Assembly (NCBI GenBank): GCA_950097015.1
Contig: CATNEN010000011.1
Location: 3,100,001 to 3,164,000 of the forward strand
Reading direction: 5' to 3'
Length of the DNA: 64,000 nucleotides
From: Macrostomum hystrix
Lineage: Eukaryota > Animalia > Platyhelminthes
Positions within the stretch are counted from its first letter, which is position 1, and every line of letters begins with the position of its first letter. Of this stretch, positions 623-64,000 are shown piece by piece. The position numbers and the translations under genes are program-made. The notes beneath the pieces were generated by a model. That model was given only the letters and a program-made list of their open reading frames with translations. It was not told the DNA's origin and did no database searches.

Positions 623-3219
623 ATGAGTTCAAATTTGTTTTACTACTTTATTTTGGCTGCATTTGGCCTGATCGAAAAAGCTGGTAAATAAAATATTTTC
701 GTTTGAACAGAGTCTTGTGAGTGTACATAACAATTGTTTTGTTAATTATTATTATATAATTATGTTGAACGCATTTCAGAAGCATGCTGGAGTGAAAATC
801 GGTACTCGGGTAATGGAACGATCGCTTGTCCTACAGAGTCGCCAGGATTTAGTAGCAGTAGCTACCCTAACAACCTGAATGTTGGATGGACAATCCACTC
901 TTCGCGGATTAAAATTCGCTTTACAAAGCTAGACATTCAACCTAGAGTGCTGTGATAAAATACATATTTATGAGTCGATAACACTCCGGAACGCTAACTA
1001 TGAGAAATTCCGGCTTTGGGGATCGGACGCGGTTGAATCCGAGTATTGGCTGGATGGCCCGGTCCATATCATCTTCGTTACCGGTAGTGTAGTGCCCAAG
1101 ACTGGATTTCGGCTTGTTTACGAGACAAGAAATGACTCGTTTTCAGGTTAGTGGAGACTTATTGTCGAATAGAGTACGCGTTCTTGAGGCCGTGTCCTTG
1201 AGGGACCGCGTCCTAGCTTGAGGGACCGTGTCCTTGAGGGACCGCGTCCTTTAGGGGGCCGCGTCCTTGAGCGGGCCGTGTCCTTGAGGGGCCGTGTCCT
1301 TGAGGGACCGCGTCCTTTATAGGGGTCGCGTCCTTGAGGGGCCGTGTCCTTGAGGGACCGCGTCCTTTATAGGGGTCGCGTCCTTGAGGGACCGCGTCCT
1401 TTATAGGGGTCGCGTCCTTGAACGGGCCGCGTCCTTGAGCGGGCTGTGTCCTTGAGGGAGCCGCGTCCTTGAGCGGGCCGTGTCTTTCGTACAAAAATCC
1501 GACGTCGGCTGAATTTCTCTTGTCGGCTGGCAAATGGAACTTTTACATTACGCCGAAGAAATCCGATGAAACGAAAATTGTACAATTATACATGCAAAAA
1601 CAACGAAAAATCATCAAAAGACGCAAGATCAGCTTAAAACGCGAACGTCGACTGAACGTTGGTGCAATCTAAAAGTTCCTATATAATTTGCCATCGACGT
1701 CGCATTACATCAGAAAATCTGCAGACGTTGGTGACGCGATCGGATTGTTGTACGGGTCTTTTAGGGGGCCAACTTGGATTTGGGAGGTAGCGACACCTTA
1801 ATTGGATTAGTGATTTTCGCTATTTCTCGAAAGCTCAACACTGATAGTTATTCGATTTATAGAAATAATATATCTGAATGGTGCATGTACTTATAGGCGC
1901 AGTCGAATTCGTGAGGCAGCGGAGCGGTGTTCGCGTCAGCCACCCAGCGGGCATCTCAAGCTCCTATCCAACGCCGCCGAGCTACTCGTACATGAAAACA
2001 TGGAGCATTGAAGTACCTAGAGACTTTCTGCTTGACATCAAATTAACCTATATAAATACGTATTCATCTGATTATTTGACAATCTACTACGGCACTGAGC
2101 CAAACAAAGGAAATAACATGCTGTACCGTTACTCCGGTGCATACTCCTCAGTAGTCGAGTTGCAGTTTGAGCACAGTGTCACGTTGGTTTTTCGAGCTGT
2201 CAGCGGCGTTCCCGGATACACAGGTTTCAGCTTTGAGTTCAGTATGAGCAGAACTTGTAAGTATAGAGAATTCATTTATTTATAAGCATCCGTACTGTAC
2301 GCCTACAAGTCCAAATCGACAAGAAATCATCAGGGCACTTCTGACATCTTGGAACCAAATTTTAGCCCGTATTGATCAACCGGAATTAGTGAAAATCAAC
2401 TTTCACAAGCAGTCCGGTCTGTGGCCAGAAGCAGGATTGGTTCTGTTCACTGCACTATCTGAGCCTGCTTGTCCATCTGTTTGGCACAACTGTTGGCTTA
2501 AAAGTTCGAGAAATTCCGTAAAAATCTATATGCAGACATCGCTGATAAAACGGGTCTGTTTAATGTCTTTCATCAGCATGCAGTTACTCGTGCATCCAAG
2601 TAAAAAAGATCCAGGTTTGGTTCTTGTTTTTTAGACTGTGTGGCAGCCAGCTGGATTTCGGAATGCACTGCCGTGTTTGGGAACCGTCAGTTCGCTATTC
2701 TCAGTCTTCGCTGAGCCTCCGGTTATAATGGACTCGGTTGTCAAATGTCTTCTCCGCAATGGCAGCTATGTCTCTCGAGAGGTGCCAAAGCTGAAATTCA
2801 GTGAGTTTGTCAGTTTTTCATAGGGTGTAGTTAATTTCAAAGCTTTGACTTAAAAAATTAATTAGCTCTTTTATTTTTTAAGACAATCCGACGAACCAGA
2901 GCTGCCAGCGTTTTCCGCTAAGTGCGGCCGGGACTGCTGTCGCCACAATTGCTGTCATTGCTCTGGCCATTGTTGGTGGATTGCTTTTCAAAACTGTCAG
3001 ATCACAGCATCAGCAATCTGTTAGGAATCAGACCGATTCAAAGGACGCGGTTAATATGGCTATGGTGGGCAGTCCGCATGTTGCCGACTTGAATGTTGTA
3101 GTAAGTAATTTTTTGCACTTTTGCAATCGTTTGTGCATTAAAACTGTACAAAAATATCTGATTTTTTTCAGCAACATTATGCCATCGGCGTATTTGCCAA
3201 ACCAGATGCGACCCGCTGA
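623..3219 (+). CDS. G1: CUB-CUB-X-TM type I membrane protein, ~468 aa if a +1 frameshift in exon 2 is corrected (possible pseudogene or assembly error)
   Basis: Exons 623-683 (signal peptide MSSNLFYYFILAAFGLIEKA), 780-1146 (CUB1), 1897-2256 (CUB2), 2366-2553 + 2635-2800 (module X), 2883-3100 (TM AAGTAVATIAVIALAIVGGLLF), 3172-3219 (QHYAIGVFAKPDATR*). All introns are GT-AG with compatible phases. Exon 2 is 367 nt (3n+1); the CUB motif ECCDKIHIYE resumes in the +1 frame near 940-945. Confidence 0.82.
1177..1486. repeat. GC-rich minisatellite, ~16-19 bp units (tccttgagggaccgcg and variants), in G1 intron 2
   Basis: Direct inspection of tandem units. Confidence 0.9.
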
Positions 3220-4464
3220 AAATGATCCTAAATGACTTCGACTGATAAGATAGCAAAGACGCTATACTTTTTTATATTTATTTTTTACTTTGATTAATTC
3301 CTTCAATATTTACAATAGTTTTTTTGCATATTTAATATTAGAAAAACAACGAAATTCCGTTGCCCTCGAGAAAGACCAAAGGGGTATTTCGAATATCAAA
3401 AGCCTAACACTCGATAGCTCTCCAACCGAATGACCGATTTTCGTGAATTTTTCGCCCCTTACGATGAACAAAACTTTCAAAGCCGTCCGATTTCAGCATG
3501 GACGAGATGTCCAGCGATTCTTGTCAAATTCCCTGTGACAAGGACAACTGACATTGATTGGTATAAACCTCTATGGAAAATCCATATTTAGTTCAACAAA
3601 AAAATTAACAGAAGAATCAATACAATATAAGAAAAAACAGATGCCTACATGATTAAAGGTCCCATAAAGTTTTGCGAGCAAAAACCTATGTTGGTGGAGA
3701 ATTTTAGCTCTTGTTCTATGAGATACAATCTGGGAGAGAATCTGGGAGATTGATTTTATGTTTTGGGAGATACAGAAAAATTAATTAGGGTATTTGAAAT
3801 TAACATAGTGGTCTTTTAGTGTTTACTTTAAAAATGGATTACAATACAACTATATAGTGATTTATCCTTCTATTTTATTCCTGGTTTTCAAGTTATTAAA
3901 CTTTTTTAGCTTTCACTAAAATTTAACAGTATTTTAGATGCATGTTAACACAAGTAAGAAACTCAACCCTACATGTAATATTCTCAGTAAATTGATTAGT
4001 TAATTACCAAGATTTATTCTCGATTTAATAAGCTTTTGGCTGGCTTTTTGACTGAAGAAATAGTTTTTGTTACAATATTCTACTTTCCGTGGTTCGGTTT
4101 TTAACAAAAAATATTTTTAATACATAACGTGTAACAAAAGGGTATTCGAATGCGCGTTTAAATCTCGTGCATCGTCGAACCTCCGTGCAAACTGCCGAAT
4201 CAGCGCGAACTCTTATCGATATATTGACTTCATTTATTGTATTATACGAGTTGATCAATCTCGTATATATTCAATATATCATCGTTAAAGCTAATTCATA
4301 ACAATAAGAAGCAATCAATTATAAATAAAGTAACACGTTGCAATAAAAGCTTTAATCTACATCATCGCATACAAATAAATAAGCATAAATACAAATAGTT
4401 GTACATTTAAAATGAGTACCTTAGAATATTACAAACGTACAAAGGAACCTGTTCCAGCTTAAAC

Positions 4465-4830
4465 TTGCTGCTCTTGACTTACTTTCTGCCTCTCCTACGT
4501 TGAGGATGCAAAGCATTTTATTTGTGACTGCCCCGCCTTCACTCAGGACAGGCTCACCTATCTCGGCCCAAACCCGGATCTCTCCGACGTTTTCAGGCCT
4601 GAGAACATCTGCCAGCTCGTCCGTTACCTAAAAGGCCACCGGGCGAGCGACTCTCCACCTCCTGGACTCTCCGGAGGAGGACCGCGCTGTGGACGCCGGC
4701 ATCACAGGATCGCCCTGCGCGACACCGCAGCTTTAGTTGCCCGTGGTCTCCAAGGGCCAGCGGGATGGGCGGCAACGCCTCCCCACAGAGGCGCTTCAAC
4801 AGAAAATGTAAGGGCCAGAAAACAGAACCA
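4465..4830 (+). mobile_element. 3' fragment of a non-LTR retrotransposon (C-terminal zinc-knuckle region of ORF2)
   Basis: Translates FCLSYVEDAKHFICDCPAFTQDR, matching the C..E...H..C.CP.F...R pattern of LINE ORF2 C-termini; GC-rich island in AT-rich DNA. Confidence 0.5.
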
Positions 4831-5297
4831 TTCATTTTATGTCCCGGGTTTTACAGATTTTACAGATCTGTCAAGCCAGATTTCAATGATCTTGAAATCA
4901 ACACGAGCAAATCTTTCTGATTTCACAGTTTTATATAAATAGAATCGGAATTGAAGTTGAATCTGTTTACAAAGAGTTTCGAAATCCGGTAATAACGCAG
5001 ATTTTTGAGACAAAGTTTGCCAGTTTTAATGACTAATAAATTTACAAAATGACTCATCTGAAAAGCGGATTCTAGTGCAATAAAAATGGCACACAGGAAA
5101 GAGAATTACTAGCGAAAACGAATTAATCAATGCATCTAGGCTAGCTTTGCAAGCCAGATTAAACAAAAGTTCTTGGAAAAATGGGTCCATCATTTTATAA
5201 AACTAACTGACTTCCTTCACCAGCTTAACCTCCAGAGCAACAGTAGAGAAGCAAAAAGCGAGTTTAAAATAAAAAAACATAGCTGGATATTGTTAAC

Positions 5298-6706
5298 ATG
5301 GGGTTAAAACACTCAGGCTTTGTTGCTTGCGTCATAATTGCTGCGGAATTTTACTGCCAGCCGACTGCTTCAGGTAAGAATGATCAAACGTAGCTCATGA
5401 TTTCCTCTAATTATAGAACTTTATATGCTGTTGAGGTAAGGTATGAAGCCAAATACTCGTGCTTTTAAAGTAAGTCTTCTACGAAACCAACAAAATTATA
5501 AAAGGCTTAGGCAACACGAGTACGTTAGGTACATGACATTGCACTGTTTCGAAGTTAGGTATTTTTTCCCATGCGAGTGAATGAAAATTACAGACTTTGG
5601 AATATAGCTTGGTATTTAATGCTGGTTGCCAGGTGCTTTTGTATTAACAAGCCGCAGTTTTCCACTCGATCCTATCCAGAAACGCTAAGCATCGAACCGC
5701 TGCTGCCAAATTTGTGGCCGATGTCTGGTCTGGTTCAGTTCCGCACCGAGTCCCACAGGGACGACTGCGACAATCTGACTCAGGTCTGTGACCTTGAGAC
5801 GAGAAACGGCTCTCGCTACGGGCAAGCAACTAGAGTGAAATGGGTCTGTGGACTGTTGTTTATAAACGGTAGATTTACTAAAGGGGATTTCGGCCCCATC
5901 CTTTAATGATATTTACAAATATGTAATGGATTGCATAACGAATGCTATATTTCAGCACTTAAACGGACGGGAAAAGCTTACCCCCAAACAATCACAATGT
6001 TTGCTACATTCAAACTGCATGTCTGCCATATCATAATTTTTAGATAGCTTTTATCAGCACATATTTTCTTCTTTGTCGCCAGTGGAAGCCTGCATGCGTC
6101 CAATAAAATTTCAGGTGACTAGCAATGTCAGCGAAACCTGCTGCGCGATAACTTCACATTTTGTGTTTGCCGCTGAGCAATCGATTATTTCAGGTGCAAC
6201 GATCAAATGCAAATTGCTAAATGGCACATATGTACAGCGTAAACTGCCAGAGCCGAAGTTAGGTGGGTTTATAAAATATGAAATAAAAAAACTCAAGGCA
6301 ATTAACTATACAACTATGGCACTCGCAGATATGATTCTTGTGGAATACTGGGAGCGGATATTGATGCTCTCGTCATTAGCAACGACCACAGCCGCTGTAT
6401 TCGTCCTTATTTGCTTGTCTTGCAATCGCCTGTTCGTTTGCGAGTCGAACAAGCGCCTAAACAGGGTTCAGAGCTCGCAAAACAATTTCAAGATGATGCA
6501 AAACGTTTACAATGCATATTTCAATGACGATGGCGAAGTTGTAAGCCCAACTTTTGTTTCCAATCCTCCAAATCTACTATCTACTCTTTAAGCTACTGCT
6601 CAGTGAGACAATTCTGACGTTTATGACCTGTTTTCTCTTGCAGTATCACTATGCAACAGGAGTATTTGCGAACGATGCCTCAGCAACTTCGCAACGACAA
6701 GGGTAG
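5298..6706 (+). CDS. G2: minimal family member, SP-X-TM (~220 aa), no CUB domain
   Basis: Exons 5298-5373 (MGLKHSGFVACVIIAAEFYCQPTAS), ~5680-5843 + 6115-6262 (module X: LWPMSGLVQF..C..C / C..ITSHFVF..IKCKLLNGT), 6329-6540 (TM ILMLSSLATTTAAVFVLICLSC), 6644-6706 (YHYATGVFA...*). The exon 2 acceptor is uncertain (5608, 5680, or 5658 with a 1-nt indel). Confidence 0.75.
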
Positions 6707-8159: not shown

Positions 8160-8360
8160 ATAATACTACTTTCAGGATGGCTGCAGACAATATGGCACAT
8201 CATTTGGTGACACTTTACCGGAAACCAGCAGCTGGCTGTTCATTTCGCTGACTCCTGAGCACACACGCACACAGATATCGTTTGCAGGCACAAACTCACA
8301 CAGGTGTGTACATCTGCCCTGACTTTCTCATCACCAGGCAGTGTACACTCTCAGGCGAGG
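8160..8360 (-). mobile_element. SINE family 2, 3' part
   Basis: Shares gtgacact..cagc..ttcgctgactcctgagcacac..gtgtacatctgcc..cagtgtacactctca with the copies at ~9.7, 13.4 and 30.6 kb. Confidence 0.65.
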
Positions 8361-9205
8361 TCACACCTTACCGGTCCGTGGCCCGTCTTGGGTCTTTGTT
8401 TGTTGCCGGCGAGCGCGGTCTAGAAAGGAATTCGTGGTTATGCAGCCAGCAAAGTATTGTCGAGGTACCCGATGGAATTTGTCGGGCCTTCGCGAGAATC
8501 ACAGCGCGCGAGTTAGCTTTGCATCAAGTCTTTGAATCAATTATGTAATGCGGCATTGTGTCAGGAAATTGTTCTACTAGTGCTGAGATTCGAACCCCCG
8601 ACCTTCCTCTTCTGTTCAAAATTTCGAGATACTGCTATTGCTGCATGCTCACGTACAATAATTAGTTAATTTAACCATGCAGGACTTGAAGCATTGAAAA
8701 GCCGTTAAGAAACAAATCTTATCAGGATAAATACTTGTCCTGCAGAGCACTACGCAAAAATGACTGCCTAATTGCGTAATTCAGGTCCCCTACTATATAT
8801 CTTCTTCCACGTTCTTTTCTACTTTTTACACTAAAGATCTATATAAATTGGACAATTCATTTAGCATCCACCATCAATCGCAAGAGGGTTCAAACTAGAA
8901 AATATTTTCAACGGTCTGTAAAACTTAATTGTTTATGTGAGCTTTTCCTGATGTAAGAGATTTTCAGTGGAGATAAATGTTTAACAACTAGAAGCGACGT
9001 GTGCCATTTTGAAAGATATCATTAATTCCAAGTGAAAATTTCTTCTTGTGACTGAACAATATAAAAACAGGCTTCATGTAGCCCTAATGGTGTCGAAAAA
9101 GCATACGCAGAACTTTACCTATTAGTTTTCCAGATGCGAAATAGCTTTCATTTTTTCTGAAACGTAACACTTATTGTCAATTTCTTTAACAACATTGCTC
9201 TAAAT

Positions 9206-12200
9206 ATGATTGTGTATTACTCCGTCTTAGTCTTCTATTTGTGTCTTAAAGTCACGGGTGAGTAAAACAGTAAAGTGAAATAAACTCACTCTTACCACGC
9301 AAATAACCATGCCTTTCGTCAACATTTATTCTACAGCCGCGTGTCACAGCCAAACACTGTACGCTTCATCAGGCGTGATCGCCTGTCCATCGCACAGTGG
9401 CGACTACGAGCACAACTTGGACGTTCGCTGGGCGATCCGAGTCAGTGGAACGGTCAGGATTAGGTTTTCAAAGCTAGAAGTTGAGCAGACTCATGATCCA
9501 GTCTACCTGTACGAAAATAAAACGGATTTCAAACCGAACTACGTGGCAGACTTTGAATTATTTAACTCAGAAGCGACTAACTCTGAGTTTTGGCTAAGCG
9601 GTCCCGCTGTAGTGCGCTTCAAAACTGACGCATCCGTGGCAAAAGCTGGGTTTCGGCTGCGGTACAACACGCTGTCTGTGTCCATTCCTGGTATAATACT
9701 TACTATTGTTAATGCAGTAGGGCTGCGGGCTATGGCACTACATTTGGTGACACTAGACCTGCAGCCAGCGAGGAGGCAATTCAGCCCATTTCGCTGACTC
9801 CTGAGCACACAAGCACACAAATACCGTACGCAGGCACACGCTCACACAGTTGTGTACATCTGCCGTCTTTCTCATCGTCAGGCAGTGTACACTCTCACTG
9901 TGCCTTGGAGGTTGGCCCCTTTAGGGACCTTGGTACGAGAGGAAAACACGTTAGACCGTCTGCCACTCACCCCTCCATTCCTTGTAGGCTGAGGCGCATT
10001 ACCTTAGTTCTCATTTGCTCAGTTACATAACTAACAAGTGTTGTATTTTCCCGCAGTGGCCACTGAGGTCATAAGACAGCAAAGTGGAGAGAGGCGCAGC
10101 GCAACGGTGTCAGGAAAGTATCGCAACAACTACAGAACAGCTTGGAGCATTGAAGTCCCACCCAACTCTGAACTGCAAGTACAATTCACGCAGTTTCAAA
10201 CCGAGCCAAAGTACGACCATCTAAAGATATTCCCAGGCCTTGTGCCTCACATGGAGACTAGAGAAACCCATGAAATTTCTGGTTCCCAGACGAACAGATC
10301 TTTGTTGATTCGCTTCAAGCGGAGCGTTACGCTAGCGTTTCGAACCGATGGATCCGTTGTCAATGCAGGAGTTAGTTTCGTTTTTAATATCTGTAAGTCG
10401 CAGGGCTGTGGTCACCGACGTATAATATAAGGCGACATAGTCGCTAAACATATTTTGGACCACATATGCGAAAAGTGCATGACAAGACGTGCCCATGACG
10501 AGAAGCCCTACGGGGCTTCCAAAATACAATAAATTCAAACTGCTGAGTTTAATTGCGACTGCTGACTAGCTCGAGGTTAACAAATCAAATGCACAATATA
10601 AAATTTCTGTATTCTAACTAATGACGTCATCACTCAAAAATGCAGCCAGACTCAACGACGGAATCTTGACAACTGCAGCACCAATACGACACGCGACAAC
10701 TTCACGAGACGAGACCACGAGAACTGAACTTGGTTGGTGCAGAGTTAAATTTTAAGAGAGTGACTATGATAAATGTCTCCACTATAATTACTATACTGCG
10801 CGGCTAATAATATAATTTCAGTCGAGCCAAACAACGTCCAAATCGATTTCCTAAACCCGGAGCTGTGGCCACTCACCGGAGTGATGCAGTTCCGCGCTTT
10901 GTCTATGAATTCCTGCCCCAACGTGACCCACAGATGCGAGCTGGCAATGCGAAACAGTAGCAGCTCCATTGTAGCTGTGCCCCTTAAGCGGGTCAGTCTG
11001 TTATTGGATTAGTTTTTGTATCAATAAGAAGTACATCCCTGTCAATATGGTTATTACACACAGGAAATTTCTGGCATCATTGTGCCCACGTCCGTCTGCC
11101 TAGTCTCGGTGACTTCGCAATTTTCCGTGGTCGCAGAACTCCCGCTCATTGCTCGATCCGTTCTGAAATGCCGTTTGCGTAATGGGCGCTATTCTTCCGT
11201 ACGGATGCCATTGCTAAACTGTGAGGCCAACTGCACAATCTTTAAATTACGTTAATTGGCGCAGCCATCTATAACTTCCAAAGGCTGTGTACTCAGTGCT
11301 CAGGACTAATGAGGTCGCAAAACGTACCCGAAAATTCTGCCCCTACTGATAGTGGATATCTGTTTTACAGCTATCCAGCTCTACAGCTATTTCCAAAGGG
11401 TGAAATAAAGTAATAATAGTTAGGTGTCTTGCTCTAAGGCCAAATTTAATTCCCTTGGGCTGACACTCGAGCCCCCAAACTATCTTTAAGAAGTCCGAAG
11501 CTCTAACCACTTTGCTACAAGCTCCCTCTTGTACAAACTTCCTCAGTAAAAGCTCCGTCTTGTACAAGCTCCGTCTTGTACAAGCTCCGTCTTGTACGTC
11601 TTGTCCCTTGGGCTGACACTCGAGCCCCCAAACTATCTTTAAGAAGTCCGAAGCTCTAACCACTTTGCTACAAGCTCCCTCTTGTACAAACTTCCTCAGT
11701 AAAAGCTCCGTCTTGTACAAGCTCCGTCTTGTACAAGCTCCGTCTTGTACAAGCTCCGTCTTGTACAAGCTCCGTCTTGTACAAGCTCCGTCTTGTACAA
11801 GCTCCGTCTTGTACAAGCTCCGTCTTGTACAAGCTCCGTCTTGTACAAGCTCCCTTGGCTACAAGTTCCCTTGGCTACAAGTTCCCTTGGCTGCAAGCTC
11901 CGATAAAAATGAACAATTTATTTTCCCAGCATTTTTTCAGGGGCTCACGAGGTCCAATGGAAGTTCTACAACTGGTCGGACAAATTAAGACGGCGATTCC
12001 AAGTTCTTTTCACCCCAGCTTTGAAGCAAACTACGTGGGCCAGCTGTCGGATGTACAGTGACTACGTCTCTGGCTTTACAGCTCTAAAAAAGACAGTAAG
12101 ATACTAATTTATTCTACGACTTCCACAATAATTCTCTAGTTCTACGAAAAAAATTTCTTACAGGTTTTCCGATCATATTCGAGAACGCCTTCGACGGTGT

Positions 12201-15200
12201 TCAGCTTCTTGGAACGACCGGCAGAGCGCATCACGCAGCACTGCGTCAGGAACATCACCTGTGAGTTCACCGCTGAGGGATTCAGGCGAGTCACGAAGTC
12301 GATGGAGCCACCACCAGGTTAGTAAATAAAAAATGCTACCTAAAAAGCAACTGCAAACGCGCAAGATTTTGCACATTGAGGCTTAATCTTCTCGTATATA
12401 TTTATGGATATCATTGAGGTGATTTACCATGCTAACTTTTTTCCCTGTTTCATTATAGCTGTGCCTGAGTCGGTTAAGGTCGAGCCGCTGCATCCAGAGC
12501 TGTGGTCTCTGACTGGGTTGGTCAGCTTCCGCGCAATTTCAGAGTGTACTTGTCGAAATATGCAGCACAATTGCGAATTGAGGCTAGCCAGGGGCGATAA
12601 ACTTGGCGCCATGCTAGTTGAACGGGTCAGGAAATATTTTCAGGTTTTTTTGCCTCTGATTTCTTTGAAGTAAGTTAAAAAATGTTTCGGTTGCAGAAGA
12701 CTTCAGAACCTACTTGTACTTCGCTGCTCAGCTGCTCAATTGTAGTGACTTCACAATTTTCGGTGGTTGCTCGTCAGTCTGACATTTCAGGCTCTGTTAT
12801 TGCGTGTCAAATACTCAACGGCAGTTATTTCAAATACGTTCTGCCGCCAACTAACAGTGAGTCACGGGGGAAGTAGCTACTTGTGATCCCTTAAAGATTG
12901 TTTAAACTTGACTTTTAAACCAAAAACATTCAGTAACTGGGGAAAACGGACTGGCTGTAAGTGACTGGAGTGGCAGATCGGCATCTCGCTTGAGGATCAG
13001 ACTGTCACTCAATGCCGCAACAAATTCACCATTGTCGGCCACGTGCCGTCTGCGTCACGAGTGCCGGGGTGGATCTAGCACTTTACATCTGACTTCAGTA
13101 TGCAAACTGCACGATGCTAATTGGTGCTACTTGTTACTTGCTACGTAGCTACTTGAATCTAAGGACATCTTTCTGCTCTTTTTAGGTCCCTCATCAGAAG
13201 TCGAGTCAATTACTGTCACTGTTTGAGTCCAATCGACTTGTAATCGGAGGCGCTAATGGGGTCTGCGTCCGCAACGTCACCATCTGCGAGTTTTCTAACG
13301 CAGGGATCCCTGGAGTGCAGTCGAAGTCCTTCACTTTACCTTCTGGTATGATCAGGGTGTTACCATAATAATAATAATTACAGGATGGTTGCGGGCAATG
13401 GCACAACATTCGTGACACTAGACCCGCAGCCAGCAAGGAGGCAATTCTACCCATTCCAATTACTCCTGAGCACACACGCACACAGATACCGTACGCAGGC
13501 ACACGCTCGCGCAGGTGTGTACATCTGCCCTGACTGGCAGTGTACACTCTCACAGTGCCTTGGAAGTTGGCCCTCAAGGACGTAAATAGCACGACAATCC
13601 TCCATACCTTTTCTTTACGGCTGCTCCCCAAATGGCCTCGCCGTGGAATCGAGCTCAGGGACCGTGGTAGAGAGGCAAACGCATTAACCGCTTGCTACCG
13701 ACCCCCTAATATATTTAATCTAGGTGTTTTCCATGGTTAAATATAGGGTTCATTACTTGGTTTTGAGTGCTTAAATATCTTGGAATGCGAAGCGCACGAG
13801 TTCCATAGACATTTAAGCAAGAAAACCAAGTATTGAGTAGTACTGTAAAACGATTTTTAATTCCTGAGTCTCGACCATAGACTATGCATTAAAAGCGTGC
13901 ATTAAACGTCCCGCGGTTCCTAATTGGCTAAAAGCATTTAATGCACACTTTATCGTTTATTGCACGGTTTTTAACATTGCAATCGTTTTACAGTAAAATT
14001 TGTTTTATCCTTTTATGGCATAAATTAAATGTTAATCGCAAACAGTTCAAGATGAACATGACCACCTTAACTATGCTCAGCGTACCCGGAGTCGGTGAGA
14101 ATTCAGCCAATCCAGCCCCAGCTGTGGTCGCAGACAGGGCTGGTGTACTTTAGTGCATTGTCTGAAGCGGCCTGTCCCAGTGTGAGGCATCGCTGTGAGC
14201 TACGTACGTCCAGCGGCGAGTCACTCACTGCCAGGCAGGTGAAACTGGTGAGCGCTGATGAGTTGTACAGCTTAGGCTATGTACAACAATATTATAGATT
14301 GCTGTAAAAATGTTACAATTTGTTAATTTTAGATCGTGTCAGAGCCAGCAGGACTGCAGTGTCTGAGCACAGTGGCGTCTGATTTCTTTGTCGACGCTCC
14401 ACCGTCATTAGTAGTTGGCTCAGAGATCAAGTGCCATCTGCTGAACGGCAGCTCAGCTCTGTATCAATTGTCGCATTTGAAAATCGGTGAGCTCTCTGCC
14501 CACTTTCGATGTTTTGTTTTGAACCATACTGTCTCTTAACAGACGTCACAGAACTCAATTCTGAAATGGATCGTCCAGAAAAACTACGAGCCAGCGCCTC
14601 GGAGCGACCACTGATCTGGATTTTATCCGTGACAGTCACTTTGGCTGCCATCGCACTAACCGCTGTGTTAATCCTGCTATTCAAGAGCCTGAGGTGGATT
14701 CAACTTAAAAAGGCCAATGATTCAAAGAGGGAGCCAGTGGGTTTGCTGCCGACAAACCATTTCTATGCCAATGAATCCGCCAATACAGAAACGGTATGTA
14801 AGGAAATCAACACAGCATTTGTTCGTTTTGCAGTTTCAAAGTGCTTTAAAAAATGAATTGCACTGTCTACTGCTCCTCAGTCCTGGAACAAGTGTAGAGA
14901 CCGCAGGATTGAAGGATTTGTTACTTCCTTCCTTGAAGGATTTAGCACATTTTTCAACTGAATCGAGTGGCAAATCAATTGCTCACGCAATATTCGAACT
15001 ATAGAATAGACTAGCAAAAAATGAGTCTGAATGTAATATTTTGTCGTCAGGGGGTAAGTTTCAGAGCGGTTTAATGTGTTTGCGTCACGCACCAAGGTCC
15101 CTGAGCTCGATTCCGTGGCGAGGCCACAATTTCATTTAGGGCGCAGCCGTGGAGAGAAGGCTTGGGTGCTTGTCGTGTAATTTACGTCCGTCCACTGTCA

Positions 15201-15356
15201 GAAAATGATGTCCCAGTGTTAACAGCCGTCTTTTAAATATCATTCTATTATTTTGCGCAAGAACATTAATTACTCTTCATCTTGTGACTTTATGCTGACA
15301 CAAATAAATTTCAGCTCGATGACAAAGTCGACACAACGGGTGTTTATGTTTCGTAG
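9206..15356 (+). CDS. G3: SP-CUB-CUB-X-Y-X-Y-X-TM type I membrane protein (~880 aa; ~909 aa with an optional Thr-rich exon)
   Basis: Exons 9206-9257 (SP), 9337-9690 (CUB1), 10057-10392 (CUB2), possible 10646-10732 (Thr-rich linker), 10822-10991+11064-11220 (X1), 11941-12095+12164-12317 (Y1), 12459-12625+12697-12856 (X2), 12934-13097+13186-13345 (Y2), 14081-14247+14333-14486 (X3), 14543-14793 (TM LIWILSVTVTLAAIALTAVLILLF), 15315-15356 (LDDKVDTTGVYVS*). All GT-AG, phase-consistent and open. Confidence 0.85.
9695..9990 (-). mobile_element. SINE family 2 copy in G3 intron 2
   Basis: Body homologous to 13366-13690, with a partial tRNA-like head at the right end. Confidence 0.65.
11450..11900 (-). 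repeat. Two tandem tRNA-like heads (~11452-11530, ~11604-11680) interleaved with a 15-bp tandem array (tacaagctccgtctt)
   Basis: The minus strand reads gggagcttgtagcaaagtggttagagcttcggac (A-box-like) twice; the 15-bp unit resembles the 5' end of that head. Confidence 0.7.
13366..13690 (-). mobile_element. SINE family 2, near full length (tRNA-like head, body, (TTA)n tail)
   Basis: Minus strand: agcggttaatgcg...ggtccctgagctcgattccacggcgaggcc head, shared body, and a TTA-repeat tail at ~13366-13380. Confidence 0.7.
15062..15170 (+). mobile_element. SINE family 2 head fragment in the last intron of G3
   Basis: gagcggtttaatgtgtttgc..ggtccctgagctcgattccgtggcgaggcc matches the reverse complement of 13580-13690. 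Confidence 0.6.
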
Positions 15357-49377: not shown

Positions 49378-49529
49378 TGTAAGATTGTTGGCAACATGTC
49401 TGCACGCGCTATGTACGTTTGCATGCTGTACAATGGTGTACATTAATCGTTAAAATATAAGCGAGTGAGTTGACGCCTTAAGTGGCGAGAAGTTGGTCTA
49501 CGCTACAATCTCGTTTTCGGCGGCTTACA
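49378..49529 (+). repeat. 5' LTR of gypsy element 2
   Basis: Matches 56216-56367. Confidence 0.93.
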
Positions 49530-49545
49530 CTGGTGGCAGCGGTGG

Positions 49546-50390: not shown

Positions 50391-51287
50391 GAATCCCGGC
50401 GCAGCCAGTCCTGGAGGTGTCCTGCTCAGCCACCGGCGCCAACATGCTGGTGCAGTGCCGCATTCTGCCGATGGGTGTCCCTGCCAGCTGTTTGGTTGAC
50501 ACTGGGTGTTCACAGTCGCTGATGTCGAGTTCCCTGTTTCGTAAGCTGAATGAGAAACTTTTGCCGTTGGCGACGCCCGTGTATCTGAAGCTGGCAGACG
50601 GCAACTATTTGGCAGCCTGTGGTTGGCAGGAAGTGCAGCTGAGTTTCGGTGTTGCAACTGTTCGGCAGGAGGTGTTGATCGTCAACAATCTGGCGAAGGA
50701 TTTTTTGTTGGGTGCAGATTTCCTGAGAAGTTGTGGCTGCATCATCGACTGCAATCGTCAAACGCTCAGTGTGTGCTTCAGCAATGCTTCAGAAAATGGA
50801 ATCTTCAGCACAAGGGAGTGGTGCATTCGCCGTTGAAGTGGCGGACCGTACAACTGTACCCGCTGGTCATGAAATCGTGTTTCCTGTGAGACTGGCGACT
50901 GGATCAGCGACTGCTGTTAATGGTGAGTGCGGAATCTTTGAGCCCGACAATTCAAAGGAAATCTCAAATGTCCTGTGTGGAGCGCGCAGCCTTTCCGTAA
51001 TGCGAGGCGGACTCATCGCTGTGCACTATGTCAACACGGATACTAAGCCTCATACTTTTTACCCCGGAACTAAACTGGGGAGTTTCGAGCCGATGGAGAC
51101 GGAGTCGCTAATGCAAGTTGAGTCAGTGAAAGACCAAGAAATTGAGCATGGACCCGATGTTGTAGCGCAAGTGCATATCGATGAGAACAATCTGACAGCC
51201 AATCAAGCCCGGAGTGTCAAGGACATGCTGCATCAGTACCGGGATGTGTTCTCAAAGAGTCCGAACGACCTGGGCTGCACTACACTG

Positions 51288-52036
51288 AGCGTAAGTGGGG
51301 TTGCCTGCCGTGGACACGTTGTCTATGGGCAAAGTTGAGAGAGAAATAAAGAGAAGATAAGGGGAGGGGTATAGTCGATCTTCTAGCAGCCTCGTTCATC
51401 GTTTAGAATTGCGTAGCGAAGTGCACGAAATAAAATCAAGTGGAATGGAATTCGTTCGATGGAGAGTCCTTCTCCACCTCCAGACGTGCCTGTTCTGTTG
51501 CGTGTCTCTGCTCCTCAATCGCGTAAAAGTTATCCATGTCATCCATCTTCCGCTTGGTTCTCTTAGGAGTCGCTTGCGGAGTGCCAACTTGCTTCCTCCA
51601 ACGACGTTCACTTTCGACGCGATGTTGTCCCAACAGGCCTTCTTTTGCTTCTGCATCTCGGCTCGTTGATCCTTTGAATTTATTACGCTAAGATATCGCT
51701 TGACGCATTCCATTAACTCTTCCTTCTCAGCGGACGTAAAATTTGGAGCACGTTTGACTGACGACATCTTGACTGACTCTGCACAGTTAGAATAGGGCCT
51801 CGCTCGTCTGACTTACGAGTGGTCTTGACCACTCTTATATTTAAGAGCGCTTGTAAGATTGGTCATAGACTTACGAGGCGTTCGAGAAACAACTTTCTGC
51901 GTACTTTTACGAAGTCGCAAAGTTGCGATGGATCTTACGCAGAGCGGGCTTGCGAGCCTTTCCAGCAAGCCATAAGTATGCCTTCCCCAACTTACGTCTA
52001 TGTCCAAGCCTAAGTGACTTTCGAGAAACGCCCCCC
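51288..52036 (-). mobile_element. PIF/Harbinger-like fragment carrying a Myb/SANT-like DNA-binding protein gene; one end truncated
   Basis: MSSVKRAPNFTSAEKEELM..KKACWDNIASKVN (51767-51396, frameshifted); terminus tttcgagaaacgcccccc at 52019-52036; interrupts pol. Confidence 0.7.
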
Positions 52037-52080
52037 AGGACCACAAAATCGACACGGAGTCGGCGCAGCCCATCAGAGTA

Positions 52081-53321
52081 CACTCAGCAACATTTAAAAC
52101 GCAACACTCTAACTAGAAGAAAAATCAAATCACCCAGAAGAGTCAAAGCGCATAGTCTATGGTTCAAATCGAGCTTCAGAAACGCGTGTAGCTTCCTCTC
52201 GCAAGTAACAGGGCGATGACTATGGACTGTTTTCAGATAGAGTGATCCAGCTGAGAGAATGGTTCAACAGATGACAGACGCGGAAAGATGGCGAGCAGTC
52301 GGAATGTTGGAAGCAGGTTGTACTCTTCGAACAGTTGCGAACCACTTCGGGAGGTCGCCTTCAACAGTTTTACGTCTGCTACAGAAGAGCAGAGCCACTG
52401 GAAGCGTGGCTCACGCGAGAAAAGGTACGGTGCTTCACCAACTTCGCAGTACAACAGCGAGGGCAGATCGACGCCTGCTGAGAATAGTGCGTGGAAATCC
52501 CACACTGCCTGCCACACTCCTGCGATTGATGTGGGCAGAGAGAAGCCGCAGAGGCAACGTTCTCAGCGCGCAGACGATTCGCCGCAGGATTCACGCTGCA
52601 GGATTGCGGTCAAGAAAAATGCGGAGGAGGTCGCGTTTGAGTCCTGCACATGTCGCTAACAGGGAACTGTGGGCCATGCAGCGGGCGCACTGGCGGCAAG
52701 GACAGTGGCAGCGCGTTATCTTTACAGACGAGAGTCGGTTTCGTCTTTTTCGCAGTGATGGTCGAATTCGCGTCTGGCGTGAGCCACGGCAAGAGCTTCT
52801 GCAGCAGCACGTGCAAAGCTGCGATGGGCAGGGACCCTCCGTACACGTGTGGGCAGGGATTTCAATGCGAGGCAGGACCCAGCTGGTTTTCTTAGACGCA
52901 AACGTGAACGGCGATGAGACGCTCGTTTGCTGCAGACGCATCTGCTCCCTTTTGTTAACAACCACTTTGGTGGCGTCGCAAACTGCAAACTGCATCTTCG
53001 GTGGCCTTCAAGATCCCCTGATATGAACCTAATTGAACATGTCTGGGACTTTATCAAGCGGAGTGTTCAACGGCAGAATCCGCCGCAGACAGTCGCTGAA
53101 CTGCGAAACGCTGTTGCTAACGCGTGGCAGGAAATTCCCCAGGACTTTTTTCGACGCCTTGTTCTGGGAATGCCACGTCGAGTCAACGCCCTGTTACTTG
53201 CGAGAGGAGGCTACACGCGTTTCTGAAGCTCGATTTGAACCATAGACTATGCGCTTTGACTCTTCTGAGTGAGTTGATTTTTCTTCTAGTTAGAGTGTTG
53301 CGTTTTAAATGTTGCTGAGTG
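52081..53321 (+). mobile_element. Tc1-like transposon, 1241 bp, ~141-bp TIRs, TA TSD, defective transposase
   Basis: TA at 52079-52080 and 53322-53323; TIR cactcagcaacatttaaaacgcaacactc; ORF 52260-53226 with HTH, VIFTDESRF and WPSRSPDMNLIEHVW; frameshift near 52920; the QQDNA-type second-Asp segment is missing. Confidence 0.93.
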
Positions 53322-55917
53322 TACCTCCTCGGCGGTTATCGCCTCCGAACTAGCGAGCGGTGTCGGAGATGGTCGAGCAGATGGTGCGAGACGACATCGT
53401 AGAGCCGTCGAGTTCTCCATGGTCGAGCCCAGTCATCCTGGTGAAGAAGAAGGACGGTAGTTTGCGTTTCGTGAACGATTTCAGACTGCTCAACTCTGTG
53501 ACCGTGAAGGACAGTCATCCACTGCCTCACACCAGCGATCTGATCGACGCCTTGGCGGGATCCACGATGTTTTCGACGCTAGATTTCACCAGCGGCTACT
53601 CTCAGGTGATGTTGGACTCGGAGAGTCGTGAAAAAACTGCATTTCCTGCGCCACAGGGATTGTTCCAGTACAAGAGGCTGCCTCAAGGAGTCTGCAACGT
53701 GCCTGCCACATTCTCGAGACTGATGGAACTCGTGCTGAAGGGTCTTCGATGGGAAGTATGTCTATCGTTTCTCGATGACGTAGTCATATTTTCGAAAGGA
53801 TTCGAGGAGCATCTTCGTAGACTTCAGCTTGTGCTGCAGAAATTTAGAACCGCAAATCTGAAGTTAAAGCCGACAAAGTGCCACTTGTGCTATCAAGAAA
53901 TCTCTTTTCTTGGCTTTCGAATCTCCAAGGACGGTGTGACAACTGATCCGGACAAGGTAAAGGCAGTACAGGAGTGGCCAACGCCTGAGGACCGTTCAGA
54001 AGTGCGGCAGTTTCTGGGGCTGTGCGGCTACTATCGTCAGTTCGTCAAAAACTACAGCGAGATTGCTGCGCCATTGTACAAACTAACGCAGAAGGATGTG
54101 GCTTTCAACTGGTCTCCGGAGTGCTCAGCGGCATTCAATCAACTGAAGCAGTGCCTGATATCCAGCCCGGTCCTCATCATGCCGACATTTGCAGAAGACG
54201 CCGAGTTTGTGCTGGACACCGATGCCTCCGGCGTGGCTATCTCAGGAGTTCTGCAGGAGCGCCGTGGTGACAGGACGCAGGTTGTGGCGTACGGCAGTCG
54301 AATCCTGTCAAAGGCAGAACGAAATTACTGCACAACGAGACGAGAGTTGCTGGCAATTGTGCACTTCGTCGGTCACTATCGCAGCTATTTGCTGGGAAAG
54401 AAATTCACCCTGCGCACTGACCACGCATCGCTGATTCATCTGCTGCGTTTCCGAGATCCTGATGGTCAGCTGGCCCGGTGGCTGGACAAACTCAGCGAGT
54501 TCGACTACCAGACTGAGTACCGCAAGGGCGAAAAACATGGTAATGCAGACGCACTGAGTCGGCGACCGTGTCGAAAAGATCCCTGCCTGTGCAGCGGCTC
54601 TGCCCTCTCTGTCGAGTTCAACGATGACAGCGCAATTCGGCGAGCCCAGGCAGCGGATCGGTGCATGCAGCAGCTGGTGAACTATTTGCGAACTGGCGGA
54701 CAACCAGCAAAGGCGGAGACAGATAGCTGGAGCAATCGGCAGCGGCAGCTTCTGTCCGAGTTCCAGCGGCTGACGCTGGTAGACGGTCTGCTGTGCCGCC
54801 GGTGGGAGTCAGATGATGGCAGCGCCCTCTGTCAGCAGCTGTTGGTGCCGGAAAGTCTGCAGCACGATGTCTTCGCCGAAGCTCATGCTGGAACGAGCGG
54901 CAGCCACTGCGGTCCGCAGAAGGCCATTGAAAAGATCAGGGCGCGACTCTACTGGCCTGGAATGACAGCAGACGTGACTGACTGGTGCGCCACGTGCAGC
55001 GAATGCGCGAGACTGAAGGACTCCGGTCAGCACAGGCGGGCGCCTCTGCAGAGCATGGCGGTCGGCAGCGTTGGTCAGCGACTGGAAATGGACTTCATGG
55101 TGGGCTTGCCGAGAACTGAGCGAGGAAATTCAGTTATCCTGGTCGTCATCGACACCTTCAGCAAATGGACCGAGGCCTTCCCACTGCCATCCCAAGACGC
55201 TGAGACTACAGCCCGTACATTTGTCAACGAGTGGGTGGCTCGCTTCGGAGTTCCGCAGTCAGTGCACACGGACCAGGGCCGGAACTGGGAGTCGCAGTTA
55301 TTTAAAGAGACGATGCGGATGTTGCAGATCGACAAAACGCGGACGACAGGCTATCACCCTGAAGGAGACGGCGGCTGCGAACGGATGAACCTGACGCTGG
55401 TGCAGCTGCTGCGAGCCTGGGTGAACGAGAACCAGCGAGACTGGGACCTTCATCTGCAGATTGCACTCATGGGCTACCGCACTTCAGTGCACAAGTCAAC
55501 TGGTCAGACACCCTCGGCGATGCATCTCGGCCGGGAACTGCGGCTGCCGCTGGACTTGGCCTACGGAGGTCTGGCGCCTGACGACCGCCGCCCGTGCGAG
55601 TGGGTGGCCGAACTGCGGACCCGCATGCAGACGTCGCACGAGAGGGCGAGGCAAAGCCTGGAGACAGCGCAGCTACATCAGAAGGTGGAGTACGACAAGC
55701 GGTGCCACGGCGAAGCTTTCAGCGAGGGCGATCTGGTCTGGCTACACAATCCAGCACTCAAGCAAGGTGAGTGCCGCAAATTTCACCGCTGGTGGACTGG
55801 GCCATGGCGTATTAAAAAGAAAATTTCGGAGGTCATCTACCGCATTCAGCTCGTGACCAACGCGAGGAAGAAGCGGGTCGTGCACTTCAATCGCCTGAAG
55901 TCCTGCAAGGCGGCCTG

Positions 55918-56170
55918 TCCAGTCGGCGCTCCAGTCGGCGCCCCAGTCGGCGCCCCGGTCGGTGCCCCAGTCGGCGCCCCAGTCGGCGCCCCGGTTGGCG
56001 CTCCAGTCGGCGCCCCAGTCGGCGCTCCAGTCGGCGCTCCAGTCGGCGCCCAAGCCGGCGCCCCGGTCGGCGCCCAAGCCGGCGCCCCGGTCGGCGCTCC
56101 AGTCGGCGCCCCAGTCGGCGCTCCAGTCGGCGCTCCAGTCGGCGCCCCAGCCGGCGCCCCAGCCGGCGCT
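55918..56170 (+). repeat. 12-bp in-frame tandem repeat (GAPV)n at the end of integrase
   Basis: gtcggcgcccca/gtcggcgctcca units, about 21 copies. Confidence 0.92.
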
Positions 56171-56215
56171 CCTATCGTTGTCGAATTGCGTCGCAGTGAA
56201 AGGACTGCGACGCAT

Positions 56216-56367
56216 TGTAAGATTGTTGGCAACATGTCTGCACGCGCTATGTACGTTTGCATGCTGTACAATGATGTACATTAATCGTTAAAATATAAGC
56301 GAGTGAGTTGACGCCTTAAGTGGCGAGAATTTGGTCTACGCTACAATCTCGTTTTCGGCGGCTTACA
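56216..56367 (+). repeat. 3' LTR of gypsy element 2
   Basis: 152 bp. Confidence 0.93.
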
Positions 56368-61024: not shown

Positions 61025-63978
61025 ATGATTCGTTACTCAATACCCACTGAAATATTGGTACTTCTTTTGACGATGCGATCAATCAAAGTGACGGGTAAGT
61101 TGCTTTGGAAAAAACGGTGAACTTTATAAACTGGACTACTTTAGAGCAAGCTGATCTTCTTTTAGCAAGCTGCTACAATGCTGATATCTACGATTCATCC
61201 GGCTCGGTGGCATGTCCCGCGAATGCCAACGAATATCAAAACAACATGGACGTTCAATGGGTGCTTCATGCGAGTGGGGTAAAATTAATCAAATTTCAAA
61301 GTTTTGTTACAGAAGCATGCTGTGACAAGGTTTCCATCTATGAGACAACATCTGCAACAAATGCAACAGAGAAGTTCCGGTTGTCTGGTTCAGGCGAGAG
61401 CGTGCTGACCTCGGAGTTCTGGATTCCAGGACCAGCTGTCGTTCGCTTTAAAACTGATCATTCAGTAACAGCGTCTGGATTTCGATTTACCTTTGAAACT
61501 AACTATTCATCTGATATTTCAGGTAAAAGAATGAATTGGATTTGATTATGTGATTTGTGACTGCTCAATAATCGTGATACCCTTCTGCACTACCCCTCCC
61601 GTCAGTTGCCACTGAACTGATCCGGCACAGCACCGGCCAACGAACCAGCCACGCGAACTTCGGTTCCGGAACATATCCAGACAACTACAGATTGGCTAGA
61701 AGCATACAGTGTCCGCCAGACGGCATCATTAGCATTCGATTTTTGGCATTCATTACTGAGTCCTGCTGCGATCAGCTGAAAATCTTTCCAGGACTATTTT
61801 CTTATAGCGGGAGCGAAGTTTTGCATCAATACTCTGGAAATCGCTCTGAAATTCCTTATCTTCATTTGCCCTACAGTGTCACGCTAATGTTTTCTACCGA
61901 TGGATCTGTTGTACATAGCGGATTCAAATTCGATTTTAGCGTCGACAAAATAGGTAAGCTCTCAGAAAAACTTACTTTCATCTGCGGATTATCGGATTTG
62001 CATTTAGGGTTAATATTAATTTTCTTATCGTACTTGTTTGATCATTAGAGAATTTAAGAACAAATCAGTATTAAACTTTTGTTCATTGATTCTCTGTGAT
62101 TTTAACTCGGTGCAGAAACCAGCTGGTTTTCAATGCTACAACCAGTGGCTAAAACTAACTTTGCATTACTATAAACATAAAATATTATGCAGGCGCGTAG
62201 CTATACACGAGCTTGTAGTTACTAGATCATAACACGAGAATATTTAAATATTTAAAGAATGCTTATCACTTACTTTGCTTTCGAAAATGATGTTAAATGT
62301 TCCTACTTATTTAGAAGCGGTCAATTTTAAGGCATAAGAAACCTCAAGGTTCTGGTTTAAGAAAATACACCTTTATGGAACAAATCTCTTTCTCTAACGC
62401 TTCGCAGATACTTTACTGCACAGCTGGAATGGCATGGCATCCGGTGGCTCGTTCTCTATCAGATTACCGAGTATACTTGCTTCACCTATCGCCAGCTGCA
62501 AATTGCGGAATTCGTGCCTGAAACAGAGCATCGATGTGGCTGTAATGAAAATCAAGAAACTTATACAATGTTAAAATATGTGTCATGATTAACTCCGACT
62601 AAATCTCTTTCTCACTCTCCCTTTCAGCCAACAAACAAAACCCTGTCTTCCGCGGTGGAAGTTTTTTTATTTGAGCTCTGGAAGGCACCAGAGATTTCAC
62701 CGCCCTACTGCATCACTTCAGTTTCTTGCACTGTTCGCTCGGCATCCTTTTCTGCGGCTCTTGTCGAACGAAACTTCGGCTCCATTGTCTGTGAGTTTAT
62801 ATTAGTACTAAACCTGAAATTAATGTCAACAAAAATATGTTAAGATGCTATAAAACAAGCAGTAAAATAAAACATTTTCATAGCCAATCCACAATCAGTC
62901 AGCATCGAACTCATCAACCCGGAACTCTGGTCTCAGAGTGGACTCATTCAGTTCTATGCAACATCGCAGCCCGCGTGTCCAAATGTACGGCATCGATGCG
63001 AGCTTAGATCAACCAATGGAGAAGTTTCGCGAGCACTGCAGATCAGCTCAGTAAGCGATCATTAAACTGATTTTCATGAAACTGACCAACCAAAATGGTA
63101 AATTGGAGCGTTGGAGAAATATGTGTCTTGTTTAGGGACATCAATTTCAATAGGGCAGAGATTGGAACTCGCGATGCTTCAATTAAACCATTGGAGGCGC
63201 TCTGTTCACTGGGCTGAAATTTCTCTTTCACAATACAAATGATACTAACTATTTGGTAAGATGACTACATGTATGAGCAAGTTAAAAGACATATTTAGCT
63301 TATTTTATTTAAGAAATTCTAGAACGCTTACAAAACACTATGCTTTATCTTAACAATACTGTAACTATATATAGCTCACTATCAAACCTATACTACTCCA
63401 CAGACAATTCAACATTCAACCTTTACGATACTATAACTATAGTAAGTTTTCGATTATAACTATAGGATACCAGGCCGGGCATCAGATGGTGTTCAGTGAA
63501 AACCTTGTTTCGGTTAGCCGTGCCTTTAAGGACAGCTGCTATTCCAACAGCTATTGTGGCGTGTCTGAAGCTGGATCGTAGCTATGATTTGAAATCCATA
63601 ATTCTAGATGGTAAGCTTTTGAATTAAATAGAATGGAAAATGTTCTGAATTCGGAATGTTTAGAATGAAAATTCTGAATTTTAACTCTAGATCAACGAAT
63701 CACTTGGAATTTCACCAATTGGACGGGCGTTGCGTCGTCGGGATCGTTCAGTGTCACAGTCGACCCCGGGATGGGCATCGGCTCTGTTCGATGCAGCGTA
63801 AAGAACGAATGCGGCGAATACCTTCCCATCCACAGCTTTAAACTAGTTTCCAAGAGAAATGAGGCGGTCTTTAATTCTGACCCAACAGCGGCTCCTGAAA
63901 GTTGTGTTTCCGAGGTCTTGTGCAAGTTTTCAGCACCGAACGGTTGGACTCGGGACAGTTCTGTTAGAAATCTGACTG
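61025..63978 (+). CDS. G5: recent paralogue of G4, SP-CUB-CUB-Y-X-Y-... (3' end beyond the window)
   Basis: Exons 61025-61094, 61166-61522, 61606-61953, 62408-62541, 62628-62790, 62884-63050, 63466-63610, 63691-63978; same structure as G4; open. Confidence 0.85.
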
Positions 63979-64000
63979 GTGAGGGATAAAGCATTATTCG

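Follow-up and report, generated by a model that had tools for sequence, protein, structure and literature searches.

A tandem array of genes for putative CUB-headed membrane glycoproteins with Ig-like stalks of variable length in Macrostomum hystrix

Five related genes, G1 to G5, stand in a row on the plus strand of a 64,000 nt stretch of the genome of the flatworm Macrostomum hystrix (assembly GCA_950097015.1, contig CATNEN010000011.1, positions 3,100,001 to 3,164,000; hereafter, the window). They are built from domain cassettes that begin and end in phase 1, and the locus raises the question of which kind of protein such an array encodes and how far its family extends. We conclude that the array probably encodes type I single-pass membrane glycoproteins and that their family is recognisable by sequence only in Macrostomum flatworms. 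Signal peptides are visible in the sequence itself, as are transmembrane (TM) helices with basic residues after them. The analysis established the exon structure of G3 together with its splicing and expression, the restricted distribution of the family, its tandem arrangement in two species and, as predicted models, the domain folds; a role as cell-surface receptor or adhesion protein is supported by the sequence features.

The RNA-backed gene G3 and its tandem neighbours

The exon structure is clearest for the complete gene G3, which encodes, in this order, a signal peptide (ATG at 9206), two CUB domains (CUB-A and CUB-B), a linker, the domains XY, PQ, XY, PQ and XY, a TM helix and a tail ending in TGVYVS. 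Four public RNA runs of one organism contained 42–45% of the sequence words sampled from 9200–15000, and their contigs yielded 14 exon joints in G3, all of them GT..AG once the ambiguity of the cut had been resolved. The joined exons form one open reading frame (ORF), in which every domain unit begins and ends in phase 1. The joints also exposed four exons that had been unseen by homology, namely P and Q in two copies each. The putative last exon, placed by a phase-0 acceptor, its phase and the terminal motif, fits the roughly 254 nt by which contig sequence extends past 14793; this last joint lies outside the stretch compared with RNA. RNA confirmed the exon joins of G3; the models of G1, G2, G4 and G5 combine homology with splice sites.

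Two kinds of repeats accompany these exons. Minisatellites occupy introns of G3 (11343–12061) and G1 (1188–1533), where either strand shows long ORFs that are spurious; for the one in G3, RNA depth is zero over most of its length. A short interspersed repeat is scattered over the array, within introns as well as in spacers (9700–9975, 13274–13661, 8164–8420 and 30526–30885). Its word depth in the RNA contigs is 270–5600, compared with about 10–20 for the exons of G3, and many RNA contigs exit it into unrelated sequence; this repeat family is abundant and transcribed.

Across the window, CUB exons matched the Pfam family PF00431 with up to 36.5 bits (cutoff 21.4; best E value 7e-9), and this support covers G1, G3, G4 and G5. 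Self-comparison showed that each CUB-bearing gene has two differing CUBs. Together with hidden Markov models (HMMs), self-comparison also identified eight copies of the X module (about 56 amino acids, aa) and five clear copies of the Y module (about 52 aa), with none in the spacers rich in transposable elements and none on the minus strand of the window. Self-comparison at the BLAST level overlooked two sets of exons: P and Q in G3, which were recovered via RNA joints, and the Y-type exons in G4, which were recovered by splice-site reading. XY and PQ are domains of about 100–110 aa each, and a phase-0 intron divides the coding sequence of each into two exons, with PQ2 of G4/G5 as the exception. 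The resulting architectures are XY for G2, CUB, CUB, XY for G1, CUB, CUB, PQ, XY, PQ, XY for G4, and the seven-domain order given above for G3; in all members, XY is the membrane-adjacent domain. PQ2 is a single exon in G4 and G5, whereas PQ1 of G4 (27268–27650) and both PQs of G3 keep the phase-0 intron, so that an intron has clearly been lost, or gained, inside one gene.

These results bear on several claims of an earlier note on this DNA, made from the letters alone. The five same-strand genes with shared phase 1-1 modules were recovered by the Pfam CUBs, the HMM modules and the RNA joints of G3, and the proposed mapping of RNA to the exon joins, carried out for G3, gave the single ORF described above. 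The start coordinate of 623 coincides with that of the signal-peptide exon of G1. The module counts of 1 (G2), 3 (G1), 6 (G4) and 7 (G3) are right when both CUBs are included. The description of the modules needs one correction: the non-CUB module is composed of two exons around a phase-0 intron (save PQ2 of G4/G5). The description of two genes was incomplete: G3 also carries an 87 nt Thr-rich linker exon, of which G4 has no equivalent, and G1 is frameshifted as assembled. The warning that the ORF track misses most exons was justified, as ORF-based tracks lose most of these genes, and the reading of G5 as a recent copy of G4 agrees with the comparison that follows.

G5 parallels G4 exon by exon as far as the end of the window, which cuts off its 3' side. 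Over eight predicted exons, from the signal peptide to PQ2, both genes have 557 open codons. Identity is 97.4% in the exons and 95.3% in the introns (divergence 2.6% and 4.7%), with dS (synonymous divergence) of 0.045 and dN (nonsynonymous divergence) of 0.021. The resulting dN/dS is 0.48 overall, 0.48–0.59 in the CUBs, 0.40 in XY and about 0.15 in PQ. The overall ratio is below 1 and therefore gives no sign of positive selection. Outside the signal peptide, 13 of the 20 amino-acid changes lie in the CUBs, and several of these adjoin calcium-site acids (codons 122, 199, 244 and 246); such changes beside the acidic triad are suggestive, although the ratio is below 1. The donor of the TM exon and the last exon of G4 are uncertain.

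The two members at the 5' side of the array are frameshifted (G1) or short (G2). In G1, the CUB-A exon measures 367 nt, compared with 354 or 357 nt in the other genes, and a +1 frameshift near 944 leads to an in-frame stop at 953. Two of the three calcium-site acids of its CUB-B are lost, and words from the G1 stretch were absent from all examined RNA runs of the organism from which the G3 contigs came. Because of the frameshift and stop, the lost acids and the missing RNA words, G1 as assembled is probably a pseudogene. G2 has no CUBs, and its terminal exon was not located by sequence reading. G1 has its own TM exon and G2 its own hydrophobic start, which argues for two units and not one gene. 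For G1, G2 and G4, splice-site search gave no definite C-terminal exon; two ORFs ending in VYV (8922–8951 and 31973–32008) were considered as C-terminal exons and rejected for want of a suitable acceptor.

The CUB head and the two stalk domains

A profile built from the CUBs of the family matched cubilin (E value 5e-27) and PCPE-1 (2e-16) as the best solved sequence relatives in the PDB, and also the CUBs of MASP-1/3, C1r/C1s and neuropilin (about 1e-10 for the latter). A lone CUB-A exon gave no match as a PDB query, whereas the family profile did. The E..D..D acids of cubilin/PCPE-1-type CUBs align with acids in both CUB-A and CUB-B of G3, G4 and G5, and they are also kept in most copies of Macrostomum lignano, whose relatives reach 62–67 bits for the Pfam CUB. 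We take the aligned Glu, Asp and Asp to be putative calcium ligands on the ligand-binding face, as in the CUBs of C1s, MASP, cubilin and PCPE.

The stalk domains behaved differently in the searches. Neither XY nor PQ had a Pfam match, on single exons or on full M. lignano proteins, except for a sub-threshold PKD_6 hit, and their profiles had no match among PDB sequences. The immunoglobulin (Ig) sequence families (V-set, I-set, C1-set and C2-set) were not matched either, at E values up to 5 for exons and 0.1 for full proteins. A recent duplication of one domain into the other was also considered and rejected, as profile–profile comparison of XY and PQ gave a probability of 0.9%.

The predicted structures give both domains an Ig-like fold. 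The AlphaFold model of XY was computed for a part of the M. lignano protein P0001, with exon fragments from the window in the alignment (A3, 20 rows), and that of PQ for the single-exon PQ2 of G4 (alignment A4, 14 rows). Both are predicted to be Ig-like sandwiches, with confidence (pLDDT) values of 90.9 for XY and 81.5 for PQ. The nearest folds of XY are PD-L1 IgC, nectin-like, CD1 alpha3, butyrophilin IgC and antibody constant domains (86–97 of 111 residues superposed at 2.5–3.8 Å, Z scores up to 9.0, 4–14% identity). Its best cluster in the AlphaFold database is A0A267GCI1, an 'Ig-like domain-containing protein' (TM-score 0.71), which, judged by the pattern of its accession, is probably another M. 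lignano protein. For PQ, the nearest folds are VHH, vNAR, LAG-3 and CopC-like sandwiches (89–91 of 96 residues at 2.5–3.2 Å, Z scores of 8–8.8). In the models, XY is thus closest to constant-type Ig domains and PQ to V-like or CopC-like sandwiches, and both are Ig-like at the level of the predicted fold only.

Relatives in Macrostomum lignano

The eight X modules of the window were combined into a profile (A1), which was compared with 1.84 billion representative proteins. Among the 15 matches, ten were genuine, all from M. lignano, and the remainder were low-complexity repeats. When the non-CUB part of P0001 served as query in a word-based search, the matches were again M. lignano proteins only. 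The relatives include PAA76314.1 (P0001), Mlig000815g2 (P0025), PAA75150.1 (P0018), PAA86082.1 (P0016) and A0A1I8HM97 (P0011), named merely 'CUB domain-containing'. Before the TM helix, two CUBs are followed by one PQ-XY unit in P0018, two in P0001 and three in P0025; P0016 has extra CUBs and one PQ-XY unit. A WE(R/L)PL motif stands ahead of the TM helix in all four of these proteins, and the C-terminal ends read STGVYVT (P0001 and P0025), SEVYVTLPN (P0018) and ASEVYLN (P0016).

The genes for P0001 and P0025 are nearly identical, apart from one additional PQ-XY unit in P0025. In the middle unit of P0025, the PQ resembles that of unit 2 of P0001 and the XY that of unit 1, so that the unit looks like the product of unequal recombination between cassettes. 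At the M. lignano locus L001 (NIVC01000829.1), the exon breaks lie at the same places as in the window genes. The gene for P0001 is flanked on the same strand by a Y module 1.1 kb upstream and by a CUB-CUB pair 6.5 kb downstream; thus, the tandem arrangement is common to both species. These family modules beside the P0001 gene (L001 8733–8903 and 20819–21992) have no gene called in the 24-kb locus, and it is probable that some family members are absent from the M. lignano annotation or appear there in truncated form. X modules are 25–57% identical between the window and M. lignano, in comparison to 21–55% between the older paralogues within the window, for which CUB-A is about 40% identical.

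Searches of the literature on Macrostomum CUB proteins, on six Mlig identifiers and on flatworm CUB/Ig-like receptors returned no relevant description. Within that literature, the suggestion of the earlier note that the family is undescribed holds, and its lineage-specificity is borne out by the X profile. The proposed shuffling of phase 1-1 cassettes with variable ectodomain length recurs in both species, and the separate sequence and fold searches of the stalk modules that the note had called for were carried out with the outcome given above. The note had also been unable to fit the architecture to neuropilin, cubilin, CDCP1 or tolloid, in line with our finding no FA58C, MAM, Sushi, LDLa, EGF or protease domain. 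It had named a full-length orthologue of known function, conserved across animals, as evidence that would contradict it. Full-length relatives with the same architecture do exist, which is this case in part and in a mild form; they are unnamed and come from the same genus only.

Positions of the genes and exons are collected in Table 1, together with the other elements of the window. GC content is about 40% in the window, and GC-rich retroelements lie between the array genes. The first of them, apparently intact and of the long terminal repeat (LTR) type, also has a 235-aa DUF7041 gag-like ORF, and the interval 20–24 kb has 62% GC compared with about 40% around it. In the second, the 974-aa pol ORF carries a long C-terminal (A/G)PVG repeat, and the protease region is apparently broken by a Tc1/Tc3-type transposase ORF. 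Two large ORFs have no Pfam match; the 452-aa one consists mostly of a perfect ELEKQRELEKHR-type coiled-coil repeat.

Table 1. Array genes, their exons and other elements in the window
Feature	Position	Strand	Remarks
CUB matches (Pfam) in ORF pieces	1878-2285, 9309-9797, 10038-10430, 25985-26476, 26553-26909, 61105-61545, 61692-62048	+	
G1	623..3100	+	Pfam CUB, sequence reading, splice/phase candidates
G1 signal peptide; CUB-A; CUB-B	623-683; 780-1146; 1897-2241	+	
G1 X; Y; TM	2366-2553; 2647-2800; 2883-3100	+	
G2	5571..6540	+	X/Y HMM matches, splice candidates
G2 hydrophobic N-terminus fused to X; Y; TM	5571-5834; 6115-6262; 6329-6540	+	
G3	9206..15356	+	16 exons, ~897 aa, complete gene
G3 CUB-A exon	9337-9690	+	354 nt, phase 1-1, Pfam CUB E 7e-7
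G3 CUB-B exon	10057-10392	+	336 nt, phase 1-1, Pfam CUB E 7e-9
G3 linker exon	10646..10732	+	87 nt, 29 aa, Thr-rich, phase 1-1, RNA joints
G3 XY 1	10822..11220	+	X exon 10822-10991, Y exon 11064-11220
G3 PQ 1	11941..12317	+	P exon 11941-12095, Q exon 12164-12317; found via RNA joints alone
G3 XY 2	12459-12856	+	HMM and RNA joints
G3 PQ 2	12934-13345	+	RNA joints
G3 XY 3	14081-14486	+	HMM and RNA joints
G3 TM exon	14579..14793	+	juxtamembrane SERPL motif, TM helix, start of cytoplasmic tail; donor 14793/GT
G3 last exon (putative)	15315-15356	+	13 codons to TGVYVS-stop
G4	25893..~31021	+	sequence reading, splice candidates
G4 signal peptide; CUB-A; CUB-B	25893-25962; 26031-26387; 26467-26814	+	
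G4 unit 1: P; Q; X; Y	27268-27401; 27488-27650; 27744-27910; 28317-28461	+	
G4 unit 2: PQ2; X2; Y2; TM	28542-28829; 29588-29754; 30368-30521; from 30864	+	PQ2 single exon
G5	61025..64000	+	G4 copy, 3' side cut by window end
G5 exons 1-4	61025-61094, 61166-61522, 61606-61953, 62408-62541	+	DNA alignment with G4
G5 exons 5-8	62628-62790, 62884-63050, 63466-63610, 63691-63978	+	DNA alignment with G4
LTR-type retroelement	19773-23584	-	1064-aa pol ORF (RVT_1, RNase H, integrase)
Second retroelement	49482-56284	+	gag ORF (Retrotrans_gag), 974-aa pol ORF
Transposase ORF, Tc1/Tc3-type	52259-53226		within the second retroelement
ORF without Pfam match	36089-38758	+	889 aa
ORF without Pfam match	40319-41677	-	452 aa

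Possible functions and comparison with known systems

In the protein that the array probably encodes, the membrane-distal CUB pair with its acidic triad would be the ligand-binding head. Its stalk would comprise between one and five Ig-like domains, in which two sequence types that are unrelated to each other alternate. The number of Ig-like cassettes would set the distance of the head from the membrane. The stalk is followed by a juxtamembrane motif of the WERPL kind and a single TM helix; the tail is short, and its terminal Tyr motif (T/S)GVYV(S/T) would probably serve signalling or sorting. The family has probably diversified in two ways. In one, genes are born by tandem duplication and die, as the young G5, the frameshifted G1 and the truncated G2 suggest. 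The other is duplication or loss of the two-exon cassettes, as between P0025 and P0001; because the cassettes are of phase 1-1, the length of the stalk can alter with the frame unbroken.

Several points weigh against this reading. What is known of a receptor or adhesion role comes from genes, G3 transcripts and predicted models, and the exon joins confirmed by RNA are those of G3 only. The assignment of the calcium site draws on motif alignment and textbook knowledge of CUB domains. XY was modelled on the M. lignano orthologue and not on a protein of the window, and Z scores of 8–9 point to an Ig-like sandwich, not to homology with any Ig set. Finally, G1 appears to be a dead gene, and in the case of G2 a fragment, or an alternative 3' part, may have been taken for a gene.

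An array of this kind might instead serve these flatworms in the recognition of pathogens, partners or self, as a polymorphic self/non-self, immune or mate-recognition system like Hydractinia Alr, the genes of the Botryllus fuhc region or snail PTC2, with the CUB head and the stalk length under diversifying selection. Specificity would then lie in the fast-changing calcium-site face of the CUBs, the two-exon Ig-like cassettes would tune the reach, and the array would be an independently evolved counterpart of the cnidarian and tunicate recognition clusters, on two Ig-like families unseen elsewhere. The tandem, lineage-restricted arrays in two species, the variable domain number, the low identity of the X modules of old paralogues and the G4/G5 changes in the CUBs beside calcium-site acids are in accord with such a system, as is a weak fold match to a Biomphalaria PTC2 protein (rank 26, TM-score 0.54). 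We nevertheless consider it unlikely: the PTC2 match is no better than generic Ig-like ones, the dN/dS of G4 and G5 stays below 1 also in the CUBs, and Macrostomum worms are solitary, with fusion not known. The CUB-CUB head, the single TM helix and the short tail would also suit auxiliary or clustering subunits of neuronal or ion-channel receptors, like NETO1/2, LEV-10 and SOL-1/SOL-2 of Caenorhabditis elegans. CUB auxiliary proteins, however, are usually conserved low-copy genes, unlike fast-diverging tandem arrays, and no LDLa domain was found, which makes this role quite improbable, even though Mlig000815.g1, which bears the same transcript-cluster number as P0025, is not limited to gonad or tail regions.

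The distribution of that transcript also bears on the proposal that these are reproductive surface proteins, engaged in interactions of sperm, egg and antrum and evolving fast under sexual selection. Some sperm and egg-binding proteins carry CUB domains, fast evolution is reported for many Macrostomum reproductive genes, and the family is both fast-diverging and genus-restricted; there is also a weak fold match of PQ to ZP-N, which lies at noise level among generic Ig-like matches. In positional RNA sequencing, however, Mlig000815.g1 was classified as 'Non-Specific' by body region, not as testis, ovary or tail, and showed no significant response to the social environment (supplement of PMC7336406). 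The 'Non-Specific' class is a mild argument against a strictly reproductive role, and we give such a role very little credence. That the array is made up mostly of decayed remnants devoid of present function is barely credible. G1, with its frameshift, premature stop, lost acids and missing RNA words, and the CUB-less G2 would fit; yet in the RNA of four runs G3 is joined at 14 canonical splice sites to give a single ORF, which refutes remnant status for this gene, and G4 and G5 retain their open codons at a dN/dS below 1.

A family of single-pass membrane glycoproteins with CUB heads thus remains the preferred interpretation. CUB-headed single-pass receptors were already known, whereas a CUB pair on an Ig-like stalk of two alternating types is not described in the literature searched. 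The family offers a clean natural case of frame-preserving cassette shuffling that alters the length of an ectodomain. M. lignano is a laboratory model with RNA interference, transgenesis and in situ tools, so that function is directly testable there. For annotation, the M. lignano entries called only 'CUB domain-containing protein' make one family.

Among the known systems, cubilin and PCPE-1 share the acidic triad, which aligns with the CUB pair of the window, but they are secreted or peripheral multi-CUB proteins with neither an Ig-like stalk nor a TM helix. Neuropilin-1/2 are type I membrane proteins with two N-terminal calcium-binding CUBs and a short tail, in which two FA58C domains and a MAM domain follow the CUBs in place of the Ig-like stalk; Pfam found neither domain in the window exons or in the full-length M. 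lignano relatives. SEZ6/CSMD and NETO/LEV-10/SOL-1 are likewise single-pass proteins that combine CUBs with small repeated extracellular modules. However, CUB and Sushi domains alternate in SEZ6/CSMD, whereas the CUBs of the window family form an N-terminal pair, and NETO/LEV-10 have an LDLa domain before the TM helix, where the stalk domains of the window family are Ig-like; the same Pfam searches gave no match to Sushi or LDLa. Hydractinia Alr and other invertebrate Ig clusters resemble the array as clustered, lineage-specific single-pass genes with divergent tandem Ig-like domains and Tyr-containing tails. Alr has no sequence similarity to the window family, which is known from genes and models and not from a recognition function, and to our knowledge the Alr proteins have no CUB head. 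The M. lignano stalks examined begin with PQ, whereas those of G3 and G1 begin with XY, and P0016 has additional CUBs, unlike the window genes. The M. lignano proteins nevertheless belong to the same family as those of the window: a CUB-CUB head precedes PQ and XY domains in alternation, the WERPL motif stands beside the membrane ahead of the TM helix, the end is (S/T)GVYVT, and intron positions and the tandem same-strand arrangement are common to both.

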